Numbered from the whole stretch's first letter, positions 1 to 46,578 are shown. The stretch is 63,966 bases of DNA, filler included, from Reticulomyxa filosa (GCA_000512085.1; 17 parts of 17 records of this genome joined end to end with filler, not necessarily neighbours in it), one strand, 5' to 3'. Translations and numbers: made by a program. Notes: generated from the sequence alone by a model not told the origin.

Positions 1-314
1 GATGTTCTTTTGAACGATCAGCGATTTTTTTTTGACAGCTCATACAATGACGAAATTTGGACTCTTTAAATTGCTTTCTTCGTTAATAGCAAAAACAGAA
101 AATATAAAGTTGTGTTTGCTCAAAATGACAATTCAACGTCAAGTTGTGCACTCGGATTGAATATTGCGCACAACTTTTTTATATTATCAACTATGCATTG
201 AGAGTTTTACTTCAATACTTTTTCTAAATTCAAATTTTAATTGTAATGGCACGTACTGATATAATACTTGTAAAAAAAGCATAAATGAAATAATCAAAGA
301 GCTATAAAGAGTGA

Positions 315-853
315 TCAGTCGCTATTTAGTGACTTTTCAGGAATGGCAATGCCAACATTGTTCTCGTTCATTGCATTTTCTGAGAAGATTGTCGTCTCAT
401 TTAAAGTTGCAGGTTCTTTGAAAGGATTATCTTCTTTGGTTTTTTGGTATCCATTTACCTCCTCTTCGGGTGACGTGGACTCCTTTTTTTCCCCAATCAA
501 ACAAACGAAATAATTTTGGTCTGTGTGTTTTTGTTTTCTTAAACTGATTTGATTTCTTCATTGGCAGGCGTTTCAATCTTTTGCTCGGTTTTCTCCCTTT
601 GGGTATTTGTTTAATGAAAATAAAGTGTATAATGTAAAGATAAACAAACTTACTTGTTGACATTTTCTGACACGGAATATCTCTTTTGCTGTGATGCATT
701 CCATTCATCAAAAGTTCGCGTAAATTGACTGACGTTATGGGAAACCAGCATTCCAGGTATTAGTGTTGAACCGCTTTGGACGTCCATAAGTCCATTCAGA
801 CCCAGAGCGTCATTTGTATTAAAATGAGCAACAATATCTCTGTTATTGATCAT
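315..853 (-). CDS. Hypothetical spliced protein (fragments)
   Basis: Short minus-strand ORFs (650-853, 315-500) with protein-like composition, separated by AT-rich intron-like stretches. No family recognised. Confidence 0.3.
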
Positions 854-911
854 GCAAACTTATGGCATCTTTCCTGTGTATCTTCTTTTCTGATTCAAAA
901 AATTGGAGAAG

Positions 912-1507
912 TTATAAAACTTTTCGGAAATTAGAGTTAAAAAACCTGACAAAGTGTTGACAATTGTTGGCCAATCCAGTGTACTCTGGATGGCGCTGTT
1001 GCCAAGACAGTAGCCAATTTCCAATCTGTGAAGCGGATAGCCTCTTGTTCTTTCGAATCGCTTGAAAAGTTGATAATATCAGCCATCTTTCTGTGAAATT
1101 GGCGTTTGTGTCAAACCAAAATGCTCTCCTCGTCTGCGTGTTATTTGGTAACTGTACGTATACACACAATAGTCAAAAAAATTGTGCAACGACGCAAAGG
1201 GGAGGCAATATGAAGTCGATCAACAAGCACATACCAAAAGCCATTCAATTTCACTAGTATCAAAAAATTCAATGCGAAGTAAGTGATTGGGGCCTTCGAA
1301 GGCTAAAGCCCAATGATAAAACATTCGACTTCCTTCCAAAAGTCTTCGAATAGCATAGACAGTATGAAAAGCTTGTTTTTCTGTCATCTTTTGTTTGCAC
1401 AAATTCTCCAATTTCATATGATTTCTCGTCGCAAATTTTTTCCATTTCGACAATTGGGCTTCCGCTCTTGATCTCAGCAACTTTTCCAAAGGTGCGTAAA
1501 ATGTCAT
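912..1507 (-). CDS. Permuted papain-like (PPPDE/DeSI/LRAT-type) domain protein; upstream ORFs to 2455 may be further exons
   Basis: A GT-AG intron (1234-1152) joins ...FYHWALAFEG...EWLL to LPNNT...EYTGLANNCQHFV. His (1313-1315) precedes an NNCQHF Cys (~960-962), as in circularly permuted NlpC/P60 peptidases. Confidence 0.6.
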
Positions 1508-1657
1508 ATCACTTTCGACTAAGTTGCAAAAGAACCAATTTTTCAATAGCAATGAAGGGCTAGAAAATAAATGCTGGATGTATCTAATATATGTGCATAC
1601 ATATACATTATAGCCTATGCGCTCTAACGCACGCACATGCTACCAATCATATATCAC

Positions 1658-2455
1658 TCAAAAGACAACCAAATTACGTATACACTTTTTTTTGGGACAA
1701 AACTTGCGTATAATGTCCACTTGTTTGGCACCAGCTCTTAACGCCTTCAACTCTAAAAACCCTGGCAAGGATCTTCGACATAAAACTTTGACATCTTCTT
1801 TCATTTCCTCATAGAGAGAAGAATCAATACACTTCTTGTTATAGGGCTCAGGATAGGATTTGCACGGAAATAGTTTTTGCTTCGACTCTTTATGCTTTTT
1901 TTTTGTGTAAAAAAAAATTATCACACAATGCACAAAGCTTCTTATCAAAACTTCGGCATCAATAAGTTTTTCTAAATTTTTCAATGCATCATATGACGTC
2001 CGGAAAGGAAATGCATAATATTTCGAACGAAATTCAAATACCAGTTCAAATTTGAATTTCTGTTCCATATTTTATTGATATAACATCGTTAACCTTCTTA
2101 GCTGAGCGTTACAAAATGCAGGAGAGAAAAGAGTCAGTTTTTTTTTAGTCACCCATTCTTTGGCGGAAACAATCGAGTTTTCTGATACACCTAGGACGGA
2201 AATGAATGCAAAATAATTATGTTCCCAACGAGGATATTGTTTTTGAATGTAGTTTTTGCAGCATTTGCCATTTGTGATGTGTTTGTCCAGACACTTCCAT
2301 GAATAAACTTCGGACAACTCAATGTTTTGTATTACTTTGTCCATCGTCAACAAGTCTGGACAACTTTCTGGACAAGCTTCAGCTTCAACTTCTGCGTCAC
2401 AATCTTCACATTTTTCATCAGCAGACGTTAAATTAAATATTCGCAACATCACCAC
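1658..2455 (-). CDS. Hypothetical exons, possibly the N-terminal part of the PPPDE-like gene
   Basis: ORFs 2072-2455 and 1658-2068 lie on the same strand with intron-like interruptions. No motif recognised. Confidence 0.3.
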
Positions 2456-2804
2456 AAATGGTGTTACACAAGTATTATTTTATTTTCTGTTTTTTGTGAA
2501 CGTTCAAAAAACAACAAGTATTAAAATTTCTCAAGCTTGTTATATATTAACATGTTCTATTCAACGTGAACTTCCAAATATACAGCAATCTTAGATTTTA
2601 TCTAACAAATAATAAGCAGACAAATTAATTACAAATCGATGCTTGCAATAATCTATCTGTGGCCTACGATTGTGTTAGTTCAGAGTGTTGTTAGTTCTTG
2701 GAAAGTACCTTGAATTAAGAAAAAAAGGAAGCAATTGAGCCAATTTTGTAAAATTATTAGTTTGTTCGAATTATTTGAAGTGTAAAAAAAGAAAAAATTC
2801 GAAA

Positions 2805-3688
2805 ATGATTGAAGTAGATGTTTTTTGGTCTTTTGCGATTGGAGCGTCAATTGCTTGCGCAGCAGGTCCCTCGCTGCAATACAACTCAAATCCGTTGGCT
2901 TCTTCGTATTTCGCGTACTTGTGTTTCGTATTGGCGTGTGTGTTTGCACCTTCCGGTTGTTACCTGTTAATTGCCTATCCTGGATGGGAATCGATGTTTT
3001 TGTTAAACAGAGAATATGTGAACAGCTATCCAATTCTCATCACCATCTTCAGTAGTACAAACACATTATTAGGTATTTTTCTAAAATTTCTTCTTTTGTT
3101 TTGCAATAAGTAAAAAATTAATTTTAAAATCATTGATAGGTATGATCGGATATTATGAGGCATGGTGGGTCATGCGATATACTCCAAACGGACTTATCCG
3201 CGCACAAAAGTATTGGGTGATCCCTTACGTAATAATGTTTGCAATTTTAGGATTGGGCTACAATAGATTTTTATACTCATCTTCGTATGAGAATTTTCAC
3301 GAAAATAAAAAGGTTGACTGGATGGAGTTCTTTACACAACCAAGCGACGTGTTCGTAACTTTGTTAAAAATGGGTCTGATATTGATACCATTGTTGTATT
3401 ATCCGGTGTTTGCATGGGGAAGTAGCCATATTAATGGAAAAGTCTTGAAAGAGGCTCTCAGATGGTATGGAATTGGTATCATCATTGTGTCTTGTGGTTA
3501 CATCGGCTTCATTCATTATTTCACTGAATTTCAAATTACGTTTGCGGACGATAGATACCCTTTTTGATAAATGTGGAATGTACGCGCCATTGTGTGGTTT
3601 CCTTGGTTTTATGGTGACATTATTTTGGTTTGTCCTTTTGCCTGTCATTGTGACGGTCTTGGCTTGTGAGAAGACTCACCAAGCATAG
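2805..3688 (+). CDS. Multi-pass membrane protein of unknown function (MIEVDVFWSFAIGA... family)
   Basis: ATG at 2805 and a GT-AG intron at 3073-3139. Several hydrophobic segments, with motifs VDVFWS, FAPSG and YPGWESM. An apparent 1-nt frameshift in the T run near 3561-3565 joins ...DRYPF to DKCGMYAPLCG...; stop at 3686-3688. Confidence 0.6.
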
Positions 3689-35510: not shown

Positions 35511-36790
35511 AAAAGACAACAAACTATCTGAAAGTTCACCAATGCTGGTTGTGCTGAAAGTGTTTTTCATTATTAAGTGTTGTCTTTTTGAACTTCTTTT
35601 GTTTTTTTTTGTTAAGAGAGTAAAATGTAAAATGGTTCAGTTTTTTTTATCAAAAACAAGAACAAGGATTTAATATGAAAACGTAATTCAACAACACATG
35701 TGATTTTTTTTCAACAAATAAGAAATTTTTCAAAACTTAGTATTGCATATGTATGTATATACAAAAAACCAATCGACGTTGAAAATAAAAAATGTAATCT
35801 AACAAAACTTTTACAAACTCTGAATGTATTTGTCTTCAAAGTCACGTTGTAATTTTGTGAAATTGTGTGGCATCTTTTAGTTTCTTTTCAATGATTCTCG
35901 GTTATTTCTGTTTACAGGAAGAGGATGAATTGACAAAAACAAATAGCCCCAAAACTTTGCTTGGTATATGAATGAGGCAAAGTTTAGATCCAATTTTTTT
36001 TTGTACAGTTCAGACTCTCAAATTAATGCGACAAGAGGAAACAAAGCACTATTTTCCAATTGTACAACTTACCAAGAAAAAATAAAATTTCGTTTTTTTT
36101 TATGAAAAACATGCCAATTCTCCTTGGCCACTTTACTCCCATTCTCTTGTTTTCACACCCATGGAAAAAGGTAAAAAAACCCCAATAAAAAGGGTTCCTT
36201 CCCACTTCTTGTATTTGCACGTTGGCTCAAAACACCCAACTAAAACTATGTCACAAAAAAAAAGGAACAAGTAGATTTTTTTCCCCCGTCCTACCCCCCA
36301 ACGTTCATGTATGATTTAACTTTATAAAGATTAAAGAAAAACTCAAGCAAAATATTATTCTTTGGCAGTTTCCTCATAAGAGCTAATGCCACTGTTGATT
36401 TTGAGTTCACTGACTTTTGGCATTTGAGTTAATTCAAGGTCTGGAACGACAAAGGACTCTATATTTTTGATTTTAAAAATAACAATAATAAAAATAAAAA
36501 AGTTGAGAATTGTGTCTCCTCCTCCCCTCCCCCTTTTTTCTTTTATCAAAACAANNNNNNNNNNNNNNNNNNNNNNNNNNNNNNNNNNNNNNNNNNNNTT
36601 AATTAATTAANNNNNNNNNNNNNNNNNNNNNNNNNNNNNNNNNNNNNNNNNNNNAGAGAGAGGGAGGATTTCGTCTTTTTTCATTCCCTCCCCTTTTTTA
36701 TTTTTCCTTCTCTTCGTCAAAAAAATCGGAATATTACACCTGCACAATACAATTACCTTCCCCAAAACTAAAATAATATATATATATATA

Positions 36791-39700
36791 ATGATAAAAG
36801 TCGAGATGGTTTCAACTGTCTATCTGTACGATTCCATTGAATTGGATGCGAATTTCACCACCAACAATCTTCAATACAATGTGACCACGGATAATTTGCA
36901 GGAGGCATACGAACTCGTTACGATTTATCCCGACAGTTCCGTCGTCATTATTAGCGACATGCTTATCAGTGATAGCTATTTTTTAACCCCAAAAGTAAAC
37001 GAGTCGATTATTCACATCATTGGGAACAAAATGACCTCGAAAGGTAATTGTCATATTAATCTCACAGCTGGAGTATTTTTATACTTGCAATCAGTCTTTT
37101 TAATCGAGAGCAGTGCGATTGTTGTATCACGTTAAGACTTGGAAAGAGAGGAGAAAAAAAAAAATCATACATATACATATGTATATGTATATGAACAAAA
37201 AATGTTCATGTCCACGCTTGATAATATGTGTGATTGTGTGTTCGTATACAGATCTGAACTTTATTGTGAATGATTTCGCCGCGGTGTACTATTTGTATTC
37301 GACAACTACGACTCTGTCGACGATAAATGTGCTGTTGAATGATTTGGAAATGGAGATATTGACCCAGAGTGATTTTCCCGTGGTATACCACAACGTTCCA
37401 ACATATTCATTTTTAACGCTGGAGTTATACAACATAAGTGTAAATGGGTCCACTAAAGACTCTGCACAATTCAATCCATTTGCATATATTCACGGCGACG
37501 TTGAAATTTCAAATCTGGCCATGTCTGGACTTAGTGCTGGCAGTAATTCATTATCACCACTGTTTATCTCAACGGGGAATGCTATTTTAAGCAATGTGTT
37601 CTGCCAATACATTAATGCCGCTTCACCAATATGGTTGCGAACCGTAACGAATGCCTTTCTCACAGAGATTTATTGTACTGATAATAATGCGGTAGGCATA
37701 ATATAAATAATGACAAGAGAGAGAGAGAGAACAGGGCAAACATATAACCAATGAAAAAACAAAACAAATAAAAAAGTGCACCTTTTCTTTGGTTTATTAA
37801 ACACAGAGTATCTCAGGCTGTCTCCTTTTTTACGTACCCGGTGGAGACGTTACAATAAAGAATAGCAGAGCCTATAACTCTCGAAATCAAGGAAGTCCGG
37901 TATATATCTATTCTCCCCAAGGACAGGTAAACATAACCGGTATGGCCATAACCGGCTCTAGAGGTGGGGATGCTGGTGGCATTTATATTGTTTCATCCTT
38001 CGCACCTGTTTACATATCAAACATTGCCATTTCTGGAATAAATGCCGCGAGTGTGGGAGGAATATACTTAAATTACATGTATTATCCAGTGTTAATATCC
38101 AATATCATGATCGACAACGTCCTCAATTGTATCACGGGTGGACTTTATCTTGACACTTTTTTTGACACTGTCGTTATATCGGAATTCACTGCTGGAACTG
38201 TGTATGGCTCGGAATATGGTGGTATCCAAGCGCTATCAGGTGTAGGTGCAGGGAGTTTATTGATCGATGGATTCACTCTTTTCGACGTTTTTGATGCGCC
38301 GTATGGGGGCTTGCGTTTGACGGGCATTGCGATCCCAGTGATTGTAGACCATGTCACCATTTCCAATTTGTGGAGTACTATTGGAATCGTTGCATTTCAA
38401 TTGCTTGACGTTTCATTTGAAAATGTACACATTTACGAGATCGATAGTGCAGTAGCTGGCATATTGACTTTTTGGATAAATAATACTCTCAGTTTCACAA
38501 ATATCGCAATCAGGGACGTAACTAATTCAATATATGGAGGCATGTATTGCACTGCTGCCAATGGTTCGCTGAGTTTAACTAACTTCAGTGTTCTACACAG
38601 TTATGGTACTACGACTGGAGGTGTCTATTTTGGAGCCACCATTTCGGACTTTGTTATTAATGAATTCAATGCGATAGACGTCAATACTTCTTCCTTTGGT
38701 GCCATTTTCTGTAAAAGCTGCTTCACTCCTATCAACATTATCAATTCTACGTTTGTCGGCTGCAACAATCCCAGTGGGTTTGGAGGTGCAATCACGTATA
38801 TGGGACAGACGCAAGATATAGGAATAAATACCAAAGGAACCACCTTTTCGAATTGCAAATCATTAATTGGAGGCGCAATATACTTGGGACATCCAATAGG
38901 CCACTCATATTTTTCTGACTGTAAGTTCATTGGCAATGTGGGAAGCAAAGAGGGAGGTGGCGTGTTGGTTGATGGTGGCTATATCGATGTGACAGATTCG
39001 CTTTTTGACGGCAATGCCGCAGATTCTGGAGGAGGCATTGGTGAGTGTAAAAAAAAAAAAGACACCATTACACATAGGACAGGAAGGAAAATACACATAT
39101 ATGTATGTGTATACATGCATATATATTCATGAAATATTCATGTTTTTTTTTTTCCCCCTCTCTTTCTCTCTCTTAGGAATTGAACCGTTAGTTGAACAAA
39201 CATTAACAATCAAAAACACTCGATTTATAAATAACTTGGTCGCAAGCAATGGAGGTGGTGTTGCAGTTTTACTTGCCGGAAACTATTCAGTCATCAATTG
39301 CTCGTTCATTGGTAACATGGCCAGAATGTCCGGTGGTGGCTTTTTTGATGGTAATGGATATGAAAATTGCAGAGCGAATCTTTCAATTCTTGAAAACGGC
39401 ACATTTGTAAACAACACGGCTCAGCAAGTATGACTTTTTTTTTTCAACATTTTCAACAAATTAACAGTAAAGAGAACAAAAGAGGGAAAGGGGTCTCTTA
39501 CATCTCAGAAATTACCATTGCATTTGTGCTTGTAATCACAATTACAAAGGGCGGAGGCATGTTTATCCGTGGATGCAATACCACAGTGAAAAATACAGTA
39601 TTTAGCTATAATCAAGTGATTGGCCTTGGAGGAAGTTTAATGGTTGATGCGGCAAGTGGTGAAACAATATTGGACTCGCTGAACATTAACAACAGCCAGT

Positions 39701-42149
39701 CAGATCGACACGGCGGAGGTATTTCCATTACCGGAGGAAATGTGATAATTACAAATTCAATCGTTCAAGACAACATTGCGTCTAACAACGGTGGAGGAGT
39801 ATATGTCCGAGGAACAAAAGGATGGATACTTAAAGTCGATATGATAAATACTACTGTGGCCAACAATCAAGTCTTTTTAAAAAACAAACATCTCCGTAAA
39901 ATTTATTTATTTTTTTTTTTTTATGAATTACGCATTGTTTGCTCTTTGGTTTTTGCAAAAAGGCTGCACAAGGTGGTGGCATGAGTGTTGAATCCAACTT
40001 GAATATTTATAATTGGTCGGCAGAACCAGAAGTGACATTAACCGGTGTCACCGTTTTGCAAAACATAGGAGATACGTATGGAGGAGGAATCTTCATTGAA
40101 AAGGGATCTCTGAAAACATTTGGCTGTATTTTTGACAAAAATCAAGCAAAAAATGGCTCCGGATTGTATTATGACAGTGGATGGTATCAAGATTATCAGG
40201 TTTCATTTCATTGTCTCTTTTTCATCTTTCTCCTCTCTCCGTTTGCACACACGCTTACAAAAAATAAAAAGAATCTCATCTAATTGAAACATTTTTTTGT
40301 TTGTTTAATACTGCACAATATTTTTTAAAGAGTCTTTTCAAACAAAATGTTGCCAGTGCTGTGGGAGGAGGAATGTATGCAAAAGACGTTGACATGGGAT
40401 TAACAAACACAAAATTGCTCCGCAATAACGCAAAGTACGGTGGAGGATTGTTTATGGAGCGATGCTTGTTACGCAACAGCACCAACTTGAACTTTTCTCA
40501 AAACGTTGCCAAGTATTCCGGTGGGGCTGTTCAAGTCCCCTCAAATTGTCAGTGGTGTGTTAATTGCAATTTCCAGTCCAACACGGCAGCATTTGGTCAA
40601 GACCAGTCAACAGGCCCTAAACGAATGGAGGTATGTGTGTAATCAAACGAAACGTAAACATACGCTTTTAATTTTTCACATTTGTTTGTTTTGATTGTAT
40701 GTGTGTGTATGGGGGAAAAGTGCAATTGGTCACTTCCAAAAAAGATTGTATCAGTCACAAAATTGTCGCCTTACTGTGCAATTTACGATGGATTCGGTTC
40801 ACGATTGACATCATTTGAACAATCAGCTGTGGCTTACGTGAAATTCACGACTGCAGATAATATTACTTTGAACATCAGTGGTGCCACGAGTCCAACTTTC
40901 GAAAATGGATATGCGAAATTTGGAATATATTTGACACCACTAGGCAAATGGGAGTATACACACTTTGAAACGAAAGTATCACTCACTCTTTCAACCAATA
41001 TCAATAAAACCTTTTTGTCACAGCAGACGATCACCTACAAAAACATTGTGTGGAAAGTGCCTGAAAGCATTACTGCCCTAGTTGGTATTTTGGGTGCCAC
41101 AATTTTCTTATCTGTCATTTGTTGTGCGTTGTTGATGTGGTATTATTCCCGTCAACCCATTATCCGAGCTGCAACCATCACCTTCTTGGTTGTCATATTG
41201 TTGGGTAGTCTCATTATGGGTGCGTTTGTCGTTATTGCCCCACTGACACCACAATATCTTAATTGTGTAACCCAAATGTGGGTATTACATTTCGGATTTG
41301 TATTGATGGTGTTCCCAATTGCCGGCAAAACATACAGAATATATGCCATCTTTTTCGTTTGAGTCAATTTTGTGTTGTTTTTCTGTGCCACTTTCGATTC
41401 ACACAAACTCTGTACTGTTGTCATGCTTTAACAGGCTGCAAAACAAAAGTTACAAAAAATCAACTGGACAACAACAAGACTATCCATCTATTTCTTGGGA
41501 ATTCCTGTGATTTGTTTGTTTGTGTACTTGATTCTTTGGACATTATTGGGCCAATGGAAAACAGAGTTTTTAGTGGCAAACGACGGACTGGTGTATAAAG
41601 AATGTCGATATAATTCAACATTTACCATTATTTCGTTGATTTCTGCAATCATATTCTTGTTGTGGATTGTTCAATTAGCAGTGAGTGTGCGAGGAGTTCC
41701 AAAGAACTTTAATGAATCTCGTTGGTTGGGAGCCAGTGTGTATACAATCTCCATCGTATTTTTGTTTGTGATCCCTCTAGGACTCATTCACAGCGTCTCG
41801 TTTATTGCTCGAAGGATTTTTGTCTCTGTTGGCTGTTGGATTGCTACTCAATCAGTGTTATTTTTCTTGTTTGGCATTAAATTTATCCAGATCTGGACAG
41901 GAAAAGCTACTAAACCTGCCAAAGATCCACACCACGACTCTTCAATCAAAGTATGTTGTGTGTTTTATCTCTTTCAGAAGAAAAAACAACAATTTGTATG
42001 TGTTGGATTAGTCTTCGAGTGATATTAGCACTACCTCAGGAAAGTCAACTGAAATGCAGCCTTATGGAAGCTCTACTTCTCCTAAAGGAGAAAGTGGAAC
42101 AAGTGAGAAAGATGGTTCTGTGACAGGAAAATCATCAAAAGGTCTATGA
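36791..42149 (+). CDS. Class C (7tm_3)-like GPCR with a very large extracellular Pmp/pectin-lyase-like beta-helix repeat region; 5' end probably cut by contig break
   Basis: Many 'FxxNxA..GGG/GGAI' repeats in ~37950-40600. Seven hydrophobic segments follow (~41060-41890), with 'SRQPIIRAA' after TM1, 'KTYRIYAIF' after TM3 and 'VPKNFNESRWLG' before TM6, then a Ser/Thr-rich tail ending at TGA 42147-42149. Checked introns (e.g. 41357-41434) keep the frame. Confidence 0.85.
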
Positions 42150-42485
42150 TCAAACTTTATTTGGAGACATTGTTCATTTTTTTTTTTTGTCGTTGCCCCC
42201 TCCTTTTTGCCACTCTGCAAACAACATACAAGGATAAAAATTGAAGAAACACGCTGGCGAGGATTCATGTTGTTTGTGACAAAAAGGAGGAATTTGTACA
42301 GATACATCGGGAAAATTTCCTTTGTTTCATGAATTCACAACTTTGTTTTTACCTCTTTGATACCTCTGTAACATCTCTATGAGTTCTACATTATTTCAGT
42401 TTTTGTTGTCAGATGATTTGCATCTTCAGCCACTGTTATCTAAGAAAAAATTCTAATGAAAAATTTTGGTAATTGGACATACTAA

Positions 42486-45400
42486 TTAAACAAAATTTTC
42501 AAAAAACTCGGAAAATTCATATTTTTCCAAGTCGTCCCAGCCCAAGTGGTTTTGTATGAAGCGAAGACAATTTTTTATTGACCAAAATGGAGCAGATTTG
42601 TGTTTATTGTTAAGGACCGCGCTCATGTTCTCATCTAAAAATATTGCACCAATAACTGCTTCGAATACATCCGCCACGTTTTTCATGTTTTGTGTCCTTT
42701 GATTACTCTTCCATAGAATACATTGCGATAAACTCACGTTGTAAATTTTATCACGCAACTTAACCTCAAAAGTTTTAGAGGCAATTTTTTGGAGTCGCTC
42801 GTTATTTGCCCACTTGACTCGTTTTCCGCTTATGACACTCTCGCCACTTGCCATTTTGTTCATGAGCTTTTTGGACTCATTTATTGCAGATGTATTTTTC
42901 GAATTTACGCCTTCTGTTGGATAAAAAAACATAATACAACACTCATTTGTTGCTTTACGTGTGAAAGTAGAGAACATCACATACCATCATTTATTGTTTT
43001 GAAGGCAAACCATGTTGTTATTAAATCTAAAATAGCATCACCAAGAAACTCTAATCTCTCAAATGTGATAGAATTGCAACCAGGCCGCCCCAAGTAATCA
43101 TATCTATCAATAACCGTAATTAATAAAATGGGATATTGAAAATGGTACTTGGTCAACTCTTCCAGCAAGTACATTGGCTCATGCCATTCTTCTAGCCATT
43201 TTTCGTCTGGAGAGCTGATAAGAGTTTTATGTGAGGAAGAAAATATCTTGTGAAATGCATCGGGAATAATTAGTTCGTCTAACAATCGCCACTTTCGGAG
43301 CAGACTTTTTTTCGTTAATTTTTTCATTTACATACATCAAGCAGTAAAGAATAAAAATTTTTGTGAAAAAGGAAACTTTTTTGAATTTTTAAACTTAAAA
43401 CAATTGTTGGTTGCTGCGGAAAATCCTGTTTTTACATCGATGTCAGATGTATTCACAATATTGGAATAAAAACTGGCTCCTAGAACAGCTTCGATTAGAT
43501 CAGCAGCCTGTTTTGTCGAAGCTCTGATATTCTCGAATACAGAATTGGTTCTCTTTTCAAATAAAGGAGGATGCCATCTTTGCCATGAAAAAACATCAAA
43601 TACACAGTAAGAAACCAAATTGACATCCTCTTGCGCGCAAATGGAGGCTAGTCGATTGTTCGAAACTTGCGAACTTTTCCAGCTGGTCAGGGCGTCTTAG
43701 GTTTGGTTCAAAGCAAAAATAATACAAAAAGCACAACAGGTAATCTTTCATATTTTTTTAATTTGCTTCCCTCCCCTTTTCCTCGTATACTCTTTATTGC
43801 AATACCCTGAGCAAGATCAGGAAACGCGAAAAAACCATGCAACACAGTCAAAAATTTCAATACAGTATCTCCTAAGCACTCCAACAGTTGATAATTTTCT
43901 TTATCGCTTTGTGGAGTGCACAGCGCAGTGAATATGTTCTTTGGTTCAACATGCACTGCATTTATGGTGGAATTCTCAAGTTCTTCAGCCAAATCATAAG
44001 CGTTTAGCAAATTCTCAATCCGCCACAGCATACTAGGGGTATTGATAAAATTTAAAAACATGTCAACGGAAAGTCCGGTCGGGAACAGTATTTGCGAAGG
44101 ATACAAATTCAAATTACGGAAGATGTTGTCTGGATTGTACTGTTTCTTATGATCTGTTCTTAATGAATCCTTTTTTTTTTTTTAAAAAAAAAAACAACAA
44201 CAACACAACAAAGTTGGTAGTAAAGAAGACTTAAAAAAAAAAAAAATAAAATGAATAAATAAAGAAGCATACCTCAACAACAGGATTCATAGTTCGACTA
44301 ACGTATAAAAGTTGGTTTTTTGGTGACAAAGACATGCCCAATTGCTGATAATGAGTTTCAAATGAACTGCCTTTTTTCTCGCGTATCTGAGGCATATGTT
44401 TGGAAATCTTTGTATTTTCATGTTGTGAATTGTCATTCACAACACGAGGTTGTTTGGGATGAAGTGATTCAATACCATCTTGTGGACGGATGGAGGCGTT
44501 TATATTTACCAAGTCTGAACTACTTTCCGAAAGCGAGATTTCAATTTTGGTATAATCAATAGGCGGTACTTTTTTTACATTTTGCCGATTTTTATGCAGC
44601 AATTCTGGCATTAGATCTTCACTAGTCAACGGCGAATAGATTCCATAGCTCATACACAAATGAGTACTTATTTTATATTTTTCCGGACTTTGTGCAGCTT
44701 TTTTCGATGGGAAGCACACTTTCATTAGTTGGTCTTGCTTCTGGAACGTGTTTTGCCATCCTTTTGGCCAATCACAAATAGTCTTTGTGCCAAACAAACT
44801 TTTAAACACATGCTCGACAGTCAACCAATCAATTATAAGCACACTCGTGTTGTTGCTATCGCTTTGTTCGATCAAAGGACATATGATGAAATGCCGTTGT
44901 TCGGAAGATTCTTCCAATGGCTTCAGCTGCATTCTGTTCCAGTCGGCCATTCGAAAGCATTCGCGATGAAAATCTTTCAACTTTGCATATTCCTGCTCCG
45001 TTAGATCACAAATGCTGTCATTGGCCGTTGGTGCGAGGCGAACTTTGCAAGTGATCCATTTGGATTTGTGTTGTGATGCCCGTTCACGAAGCAAATCCGA
45101 ATTCTCTGCATCCAACGCTTCTAAAAACAGCTCCACTATGCGTTTATCAATTCGTTCTTCAACGTTTATCTATATAGTAATGTCATTTAAATTATGTATA
45201 CGTATATATATTTTTTTAATGCCCCCTTTTTTTTTTTATATACATATACATATGTATATGTATATGTATATATGTGTATATATAAACAACTTGAAATTCA
45301 ATCTCTTTCAAAAAACGGGAGGAAATAGGGTTTTGAGTGACCAAACCCAAATACGAGTCGTAGTAATTGGGTTCCATGATAAGTGCATAGCAATAACATC

Positions 45401-46124
45401 GGCACAAGGGCGGCGAGGGATCGTGTTTGCGTTCGTCATACGCTTCCTGAAAAGCTTTTGGAATGCGGCGTTGACGAGCAGTTTGTGGTGGTTGTGAATA
45501 CACTGTTTCAAGTTTGTGATTATTGTTTCGCATGATCTGAATAGGGACAAAGTGGCTATCCAATTCATTTTTCTATTTGAGGAGAGAAAAAAAAAAGGGG
45601 GGGGGGAGCCAAAAATTAATAAAAAAAAAAAAATTGAATATGGAGTATCACTTAATGTCTTCTCTTTCAATGCAAAAACAAAAAACAACTGCAAAACTAG
45701 ATACAATTCCCACACGATTTCAACGTACAATTTTGTGATTCCGTACTTCACTTTTTGATCGACAGTCGTCGACCAGATCTTTTTTTCTAATGGAAAGCGA
45801 TCGCATAAGCTCACGGTGCATTGAAAGGCGTTACCCTCCTCAATGGGAATACTGTTTTCTTTTGGAAAATCTAACTTTTTAAGCTGACAAAAGGAGCGCA
45901 ATAGATGCTTGACGGTCAGTGCATCAACAAAGGCTCCTGTTTCTGGCACTTCTTTTCGAAGGGGCACTTCGTAGATTTTGGTTGGATCCATGCTGTTTCG
46001 TTCGTGCATTGGATCACTACATCGGTCCATGATTTTTTCGTGTTCCATAAATTTGATTATCAACCTCTCGTGTTGAATATCTCCAACGTCCATAAGCAGA
46101 ACATAACTTTGAGATACACACAAA

Positions 46125-46158
<34 letters not shown>

Positions 46159-46418
46159 CTTGCTATTGATGAACACGAGTGTGTATGATTTTTTAAAAAG
46201 AGAGAGATGAAATAAACGTAACTGGCTGTCCTGTGCACGTGCCCTGCCCCTGGCTTGAAGGTATTCTTTGGCAGTGTTCGGCAAATCGAAACGAATAACC
46301 ATATTACACGTAGGTATATCCATTCCCTCTTCTGCAACCGAAGTTGCCACGAGATAATTAATTTCTCCTTTATGAAATTGTTGAATCACTTGTCGTTGTT
46401 TTCGATCTGATAAGCCCT
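42486..46418 (-). CDS. Dicer-like protein (helicase C, DUF283-like, two RNase III domains); 5' truncated
   Basis: Helicase C: 'LVATSVAEEGMDIPTCNMVIRFD...YLQARGRAR'. DUF283-like: 'VPETGA...LLRSFCQL...FQCTVSL'. RNase IIIa: 'NYQLLECLGDTVLK...ADLIEAVLGA'. RNase IIIb: 'FERLEFLGDAILD...ADVFEAVIGA'. Confidence 0.93.
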
Positions 46419-46578
46419 ATTTAATTTTTGGATGGCGTATTTATTGGAGTGTGGTGTACATTATAACATATACATATANNNNNNNNNNNNNNNNNNNNNN
46501 NNNNNNNNNNNNNNNNNNNNNNTTAATTAATTAANNNNNNNNNNNNNNNNNNNNNNNNNNNNNNNNNNNNNNNNNNNN

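Follow-up and report, generated by a model that had tools for sequence, protein, structure and literature searches.

What kind of protein joins a long array of repeats, of the type known from the polymorphic membrane proteins (Pmps) of chlamydiae, to the seven-transmembrane (7TM) bundle of a class C G-protein-coupled receptor (GPCR), and how might such a protein signal? The question is raised by a gene at positions 36791-42149 (+ strand) of a stretch of 63,966 nucleotides (nt) from the foraminifer Reticulomyxa filosa (GCA_000512085.1), a stretch in which 17 parts of 17 records of this genome are joined end to end with filler and which, at its full length, we refer to as the window. Of the architecture taken by itself we are very confident. 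That the gene encodes a surface receptor of about 1470 residues – a beta-helix rod set by way of cap and stalk on a class C bundle with a Ser/Thr-rich tail – which binds an extended ligand and signals via a heterotrimeric G protein is, on balance, the account that we consider probable; within it, ligand class, dimerisation and G-protein coupling are the elements that we infer.

The gene begins with an ATG at 36791 and ends with a stop codon at 42147-42149. Its ten exons are separated by nine GT-AG introns of 61-136 nt, the frame is kept at every junction, and the spliced coding length is 4413 nt (1470 codons plus the stop). All searches used either a single exon or, as a proxy, a natural relative (P0002 and others), the spliced protein being joined for neither search nor fold. 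The parts of the gene, and the DNA that precedes it, are as follows.

36791-37130, + strand: exon 1, residues 1-113; putative start; 113 open codons; GTTAAG donor, phase 1, in frame with exon 2
37252-37691, + strand: exon 2, residues about 114-260; AG acceptor and GTAGGC donor; without GG motifs; frames join
37807-39040, + strand: exon 3, residues about 261-671; 13 or so beta-helix coils, whose GG[ILVMA] motifs stand about 27 residues apart
39177-39427, + strand: exon 4, Pmp-type repeats
39550-39870, + strand: exon 5, Pmp-type repeats
39963-40199, + strand: exon 6, Pmp-type repeats
40331-40630, + strand: exon 7, Pmp-type repeats, with a Cys-rich cap near the end
40721-41068, + strand: first part of exon 8, residues about 1042-1157; juxtamembrane stalk
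41069-41356, + strand: second part of exon 8; transmembrane helices TM1-TM3
41435-41890, + strand: main part of exon 9; TM4-TM7
41891-42149, + strand: cytoplasmic tail, from the last part of exon 9 (to 41950) across intron 9 (41951-42011) and through exon 10 (42012-42149)
36655-36790, + strand: low-complexity stretch from the edge of the piece up to the ATG, a pyrimidine tract followed by (TA)n

The identity of the membrane part follows from profile, motif and fold. Exons 8 and 9 each score above the gathering cut-off of 33.5 bits for the Pfam family 7tm_3 (exon 8: 46.9 bits, E 3.7e-12, profile positions 5-101; exon 9: 49.5 bits, E 6e-13, positions 108-249), and jointly they cover positions 5-249 of the 251 in the profile. 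By hydropathy, exon 8 encodes three helices and exon 9 another four. The motifs of the class can be located within them: the TM3 cysteine in NCVTQ (within 41261-41275), KTYRI (41327-41341, exon 8), the cysteine of the second extracellular loop (ECL2) in KECRY (within 41597-41611), PKNFNESR (41699-41722, exon 9) and the TM7 motif FGIKF (41870-41884), which keeps the lysine but not the proline of PKxY. In an 82-row class C alignment (A1), with the consensus KTxRI, FNES and PK, conservation is 90% or higher in the columns of the TM3 and ECL2 cysteines, both of which the window keeps; exon 9 can be matched residue for residue to TM4-TM7 of mGlu3, a match that takes in the ECL2 cysteine and the PxNFNE before TM6. 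The lysine of KTYRI in TM3 and the glutamate of NFNE in TM6, both of them kept here, are the residues that make up the ionic lock of class C.

The fold was modelled on P0002, which of the relatives carrying both parts is the closest (36-43% identity over exons 8-9) and serves as a proxy, the bundle of the window gene itself being split over two exons. The AlphaFold2 (AF2) model of P0002 (predicted local distance difference test, pLDDT, 87.6) passes from beta-helix to all-beta stalk to seven helices, and its 7TM part superposes on GABA-B, mGlu and GPR158 with a probability of 1.00 and a root-mean-square deviation (rmsd) of 2.5-3.2 Å over about 270 residues. Beyond the bundle, exon 10 contributes 20 Ser/Thr among 45 residues to the tail; a Ser/Thr-rich tail is present also in the relative P0004.

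What precedes the bundle is of a different kind. About 1157 residues lie before TM1, 1041 of them encoded by exons 1-7 and about 116 by exon 8, and they carry 28 N-x-S/T sequons (four in exon 1), which speaks for exposure outside the cell. Exons 3-7 repeat a GGx-hydrophobic motif about 25 times, one copy following another every 27 residues or so. The complete Pmp form, hydrophobic-x-x-N...GG, is seen in 16 units, of which introns 4 and 5 interrupt one each, and in exons 4-7 the canonical repeat reads hydrophobic-x-x-N-x-A...GGG-hydrophobic. Profiles concur: Pfam Chlam_PMP scores 24.7 bits in exon 7 (cut-off 20.6, E 2.2e-5), with weaker matches in exons 4-6, and NCBIfam TIGR01376 (POMP_repeat) scores 33.6, 16.8 and 16.4 bits in exons 7, 5 and 6, respectively (cut-off 15, best E 2.2e-8). 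The AF2 model of exon 3 is all-beta (pLDDT 74.1), and its top matches in VIA-align are right-handed parallel beta-helices without exception: the A-module of AlgE4 (2pyg, Z 28.1), a tailspike (27.6), the Vag8 passenger (7akv, 27.5) and the adhesin PfbA (about 24). Foldseek matches to the same model are weak (best E 8e-3), and every one of them is a beta-helix. In an Atlas shape search the N-terminal 381-446 residues of P0002 align to adhesin-like Chlam_PMP clusters with an rmsd of 2.7-4.2 Å. We predict that the N-terminal 1040 or so residues form a right-handed parallel beta-helix of Pmp-type coils, heavily N-glycosylatable, of which exon 2 is probably the N-terminal part or cap.

No tandem repeats are found at the DNA level in the ectodomain exons, and the protein repeats must therefore be old. 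Introns 4 (39427/39550) and 5 (39870/39963) both interrupt a Pmp unit after its N-x-A half and ahead of its GGG, which follows intron 4 at once and intron 5 after three residues; this placement may be the trace of an exon duplication or of a common ancestral intron position.

No match to ANF_receptor, to the periplasmic-binding-protein family Peripla_BP or to NCD3G is present in any exon at E up to 1; the beta-helix stands in the place of the Venus flytrap. Lack of a Venus flytrap does not exclude membership of 7tm_3, given that the glutamate-family receptors of non-metazoans carry many different ectodomains (PMC3971589, PMC3251606, PMC12716839). The first-pass annotation of this locus had read, from 36791 to 42149, a class C 7TM region with KTYRI and PKNFNESR and a Ser/Thr-rich tail, preceded by more than 1000 residues of FxxN and GG repeats that would make a Pmp-type beta-helix rather than a Venus flytrap; each of these elements was borne out, and the coordinates proved exact, from ATG to stop with frames joining throughout.

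Helix and bundle are predicted to be linked by two further elements, a Cys-rich cap and a family-specific all-beta stalk. The cap (C-x-W-C-x-N-C-N-F, 40547-40573, exon 7) ends the Pmp repeats. The stalk, of about 116 residues between cap and TM1, bears four sequons, conserved cysteines and LYDxFG motifs, and aligns only to foraminiferal and metagenome relatives: it has no match in Pfam and no sequence match in the PDB, and the Atlas offers sub-threshold Ig-like leads only (scores up to 0.82). The matching residues of the P0002 model (346-473) form an all-beta domain.

How such a protein might work can be set out as a sequence of steps. The rise of a beta-helix is about 4.8 Å per coil, and 29 or more coils would thus make a rigid rod of at least about 14 nm projecting from the cell surface. 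The side of the rod would bind an extended or particulate ligand – a polysaccharide, or the surface of prey, substrate or self. With a rigid helix there is no closing clam-shell, and occupancy would therefore have to be relayed by traction on the stalk, or by the re-orienting or clustering of receptor protomers; the bundle would then switch and activate a heterotrimeric G protein, and the Ser/Thr-rich tail would serve desensitisation. A mechanical route is conceivable for class C receptors in view of the force activation of mGlu2 reported in a 2025 preprint.

A number of observations weigh against this account, and they concern the gene model, the bundle and the rod. As regards the gene model, the transcript of the window gene is a prediction from genomic DNA only. 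Exons 1 and 2 are without a detectable relative – they yield nothing significant in Pfam or NCBIfam (chance-level matches only, such as CBM27 and DUF7431) and no match in a maximum-sensitivity phmmer search against eight relatives (E > 0.05) – and owe their place in the gene to open frames and splice sites alone. Exon 1 shows no signal peptide. The Bolivina relative P0019 (1512 residues) opens with a hydrophobic, signal-like segment, the window model (1470 residues) does not, and 136 nt of low-complexity DNA lie between the ATG and the contig edge: a short 5' exon is therefore probably missing and the 5' end incomplete. The 136 nt (36655-36790) are either 5' untranslated region or promoter, or else the last part of an intron that follows a signal-peptide exon situated beyond the contig edge.

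A model built from genomic DNA, with a 5' end that lacks a signal peptide, invites the thought that it is an artefact: two neighbouring genes, one for a secreted beta-helix protein and one for a short 7TM receptor, wrongly joined, or a pseudogene that is not expressed. The critical junction is that of exons 7 and 8, across intron 7 (90 nt, phase 0, GT-AG), and it falls inside a stretch – cap, C-x-W motif, stalk – that is continuous and in the same order in P0002, P0003, P0005, P0006 and P0019. Two of these are single open reading frames (ORFs). P0006 (R. filosa ETO25434.1) is one uninterrupted ORF of 2514 nt with the same parts in the same order; P0005 is an intron-free ORF of 3264 nt (1087 residues, with Chlam_PMP and 7tm_3) at 277-3540 of the metagenome contig k147_6769338 (ENA ERZ893790). 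Further, Chlam_PMP and 7tm_3 occur in one protein in P0019 and P0024 of Bolivina argentea, from the EukProt set, which we take to be transcript-derived. As judged from the shared order of parts in single-ORF relatives, together with the Bolivina proteins that carry both, the fusion of beta-helix and 7TM is real in the family. We reject the possibility of two separate genes, the order of parts being identical in the single-ORF relatives. Moreover, ten exons stay open over 4.4 kb of DNA of about 37% GC, in which base composition leads one to expect a stop roughly every 15 codons; an artefact, of either form, thus appears very improbable.

As regards the bundle, TM7 reads IKF and not PKxY: the window gene and every one of its foraminiferal relatives keep the lysine of this motif and lack the proline. 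Literature searches turned up nothing on heterotrimeric G proteins in foraminifera, and the literature searched reports neither ligand nor G-protein partner for any receptor of such architecture. All this would suit a protein that is an adhesin, in which the 7TM part is mainly a membrane anchor, or which signals independently of G proteins through a phosphorylated tail or through clustering, the class C core having been kept for folding or trafficking. Loss of the TM7 proline in the entire foraminiferal family is in keeping with such a protein, as is the fact that the nearest matches of the ectodomain include non-enzymatic adhesins (Vag8, UpaB and PfbA) and archaeal 'adhesin-like' Chlam_PMP clusters. 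However, the residues of the class C switch – the lysine of KTxRI, the glutamate of NFNE and the TM3 and ECL2 cysteines – are conserved across relatives at 20-40% identity, and a mere anchor would have no need of them. The conservation of KTxRI and NFNE over such distances argues for a working switch rather than an anchor, and we regard the adhesin as unlikely, if far from negligible.

As regards the rod, the model of exon 3 is of middling confidence, with residues 213-250 below a pLDDT of 50, and sharing the beta-helix fold with other proteins does not reveal what is bound. The top fold matches include the AlgE4 epimerase, alginate and pectate lyases, polygalacturonases and phage depolymerases, and one could imagine a catalytically active polysaccharide lyase, hydrolase or epimerase tethered by the bundle, that is, mainly a surface enzyme. 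But no enzyme family (pectate lyase, GH28, PL6 or other) scores in Pfam or NCBIfam, where only the Chlam_PMP/POMP repeat and generic beta-helix repeat models do so, and the exon 3 model is just 9-15% identical to the enzymes that it matches in fold. A regular GGx repeat is, besides, typical of the non-catalytic passengers of Pmps and autotransporters. A tethered enzyme strikes us as very improbable, and the receptor that binds an extended ligand and switches a class C bundle stays the account that we prefer.

The immediate family of this receptor is, so far as the sequences compared reveal, known from Foraminifera and from metagenome contigs. An exhaustive HMMER search with exon 8 returned 128 class C proteins; the matches that also align through the stalk are nearly all foraminiferal (three from R. 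filosa, three from Bolivina) or metagenomic. A few matches of ANF_receptor type also have longer alignments. Proteins with Chlam_PMP and 7tm_3 are already present in public proteomes: ETO31328.1, ETO11886.1 and ETO25434.1 of R. filosa, and P179816, P275698 and P049573 of Bolivina argentea (EP01084). They share with the window gene the order of last Pmp repeats, cap, stalk, 7TM and tail. They differ in that they are annotated as hypothetical, 'mGluR-like' or 'GPCR family 3 profile domain' and that many are fragments, whereas the window copy – a paralogue or an orthologue – is longer. Best identities are 46-59% to ETO31328.1 (exons 8-9) and 60% to a metagenome fragment, and none exceeds 60%: the window copy stands apart within a family that has at least 11 lineages below 50% identity. 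These matches by themselves place the source among the foraminifera or close to them. Among clusters of at least 50 members, an Atlas shape search with P0002 found none that holds both parts.

Some further features of the relatives deserve mention. Residues 1212-1332 of P0019 match FKS1_dom2 (27.5 bits, cut-off 27), a match that overlaps the 7TM helices and is probably spurious, membrane helix being aligned with membrane helix. The contig that carries P0005 has a GC content of 26% and holds a WD40 beta-propeller gene near the receptor relative. Four close class C 7TMs (P0021, P0090, P0119 and P0033) bear Bmp, PBP_like_2 or OpuAC ectodomains, from which it appears that ectodomains are freely exchanged on the class C core.

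Comparison with known systems brings out what the window gene shares and where it departs. With the class C receptors of metazoans (mGluR, CaSR, T1R, GABA-B) it has in common the 7tm_3 core, the TM3 and ECL2 cysteines, KTxRI, PxNFNE and the 7TM fold; it differs in the lack of a Venus flytrap (ANF) domain, of NCD3G and of the TM7 proline of PKxY, and closure of a clam-shell cannot apply to it. A precedent for a class C bundle with an ectodomain other than the Venus flytrap is provided by GPR158 and GPR179 (mGlyR), the former of which is among both the sequence and the fold matches. Their ectodomain is Cache plus EGF-like (PMC12716839); Cache binds a small ligand, whereas the window gene has a long repeat rod, and no homology extends outside the 7TM. 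With chlamydial Pmps and autotransporter passengers the likeness is that of GGA[ILV]- and FxxN-type repeats and of the right-handed beta-helix fold, in a protein that, unlike the Pmps, is eukaryotic, intron-bearing and anchored by a 7TM bundle. A true Pmp autotransporter was rejected: no C-terminal autotransporter beta-barrel was found, and the 7tm_3 bundle occupies that position.

Adhesion GPCRs (class B2) were likewise considered and rejected, there being no match to GPS, GAIN or 7tm_2 in any exon. The first-pass annotation had spoken of an 'adhesion-GPCR analogue on a class C core', coupling contact with a polymer or a surface to G-protein signalling. The class C core stood; the likeness to adhesion GPCRs is one of analogy only, and the coupling of contact to G-protein signalling is something that the protein may do. 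Dictyostelium fAR1 is a class C receptor that uses a domain of the Venus flytrap type. To it, as to the adhesion GPCRs, the analogy is functional, in that a large ectodomain meeting a surface or polymer is set on a 7TM bundle. As an amoebal GPCR, fAR1 is reported to recognise a bacterial surface polymer, lipopolysaccharide, for phagocytosis (PMC5969738).

The same annotation had named no characterised protein of this architecture, while allowing that one might exist, and here the outcome was divided. The architecture is not new: it is already present in foraminifera, an amoeba, chytrids and gut fungi. Among about 100 class C GPCRs of anaerobic gut fungi, the ANF domain is replaced in some 30% by a pectin-lyase fold or by parallel beta-helix repeats, and carbohydrate (sugar) sensing was proposed for them (Seppala et al. 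2016, Microb Cell Fact 15:212, PMC5168858). Like the window gene, these receptors have a long right-handed beta-helix where the ANF/Venus flytrap would be, no NCD3G, and a class C 7TM; they belong to Fungi and not to Rhizaria, and the window gene has repeats of Pmp type (Chlam_PMP/TIGR01376) and, between helix and 7TM, a foraminifer-specific stalk. Chlam_PMP or Beta_helix is combined with 7tm_3 also in Trichosphaerium sp. (Amoebozoa) and in the chytrids Powellomyces hirtus and Thoreauomyces humboldtii. What did hold is that, as far as our searches reached, the literature offers no paper on the foraminiferal family, none that names both 7tm_3 and Chlam_PMP, and no study of function for any class C receptor with a beta-helix.

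Whether these receptors go back to a single joining of helix and bundle was addressed with a tree of 80 7TM domains, a quick one with long branches and without Neocallimastigomycota sequences. The foraminiferal receptors form one cluster, along with two unlabelled sequences (the cluster of one of the two has a chlorarachniophyte member). The Trichosphaerium receptor groups (97*) with receptors that bear ANF_receptor; the chytrid pair falls elsewhere, in a starred group that includes an ANF_receptor-bearing receptor of Paraphysoderma. When all beta-helix receptors are constrained to a single clade, the log-likelihood falls by 120 units (approximately unbiased (AU) test, p 6.25e-7), a value to be read with the caution that the tree was already known when the group was named, a point on which the AU test sets a condition. 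One fusion event for all beta-helix class C receptors was rejected by this test, within the limits of a quick tree with long branches, and tree and test together point to more than one joining or exchange of the ectodomain. Since the chytrid and amoebozoan beta-helix receptors do not group with those of foraminifera, the foraminiferal and gut-fungal designs were probably reached separately.

A broader proposal may be ventured, to which we attach a good deal of doubt: that at least three independent joinings (in Foraminifera, Amoebozoa and chytrids, with gut fungi as a possible fourth) converged upon a GPCR for contact with polymers or surfaces that dispenses with Venus flytrap closure, and that the foraminiferal family couples the touch of prey or substrate to pseudopod behaviour, being activated by force on the rod or by a ligand-driven re-arrangement of protomers.

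The surroundings of the gene are those of eukaryotic DNA with short introns. In the piece that contains it (36655-46478; 37.5% GC), open frames on the + strand succeed one another with shifts of frame, and an Rfam scan of the piece found no family. Introns and spacers (for example 37131-37251, 39041-39176, 45244-45284 and 46128-46155) hold (TA)n and (TATG/TGTA)n microsatellites beside long poly-T or poly-A and CT-rich tracts; translated, they show as runs of YIYIYI or HIHMYMYM. Convergent with the receptor gene, a multi-exon Dicer-like gene occupies the minus strand at 42486-46389. Its ORF pieces match Helicase_C (46060-46389, E 2.2e-15) and, twice, Ribonuclease III (42486-42980, E 5e-7; 42977-43327, weak), and its 5' helicase part extends past the end of the piece.

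The window copy adds to this family a nearly full-length genomic gene model with introns, and no new principle; its significance lies with the family. Almost nothing is known of the surface receptors of foraminifera, and here the family supplies concrete genes. Class C activation is understood almost wholly by way of Venus flytrap closure in dimers, and receptors built on a rigid rod must signal across the membrane in some other manner. Such beta-helix receptors occur in at least three eukaryotic supergroups, probably as the result of separate fusions, and they would be candidates for the sensing of polysaccharides or surfaces – prey, substrate, cell wall – by phagotrophic and osmotrophic microbes.

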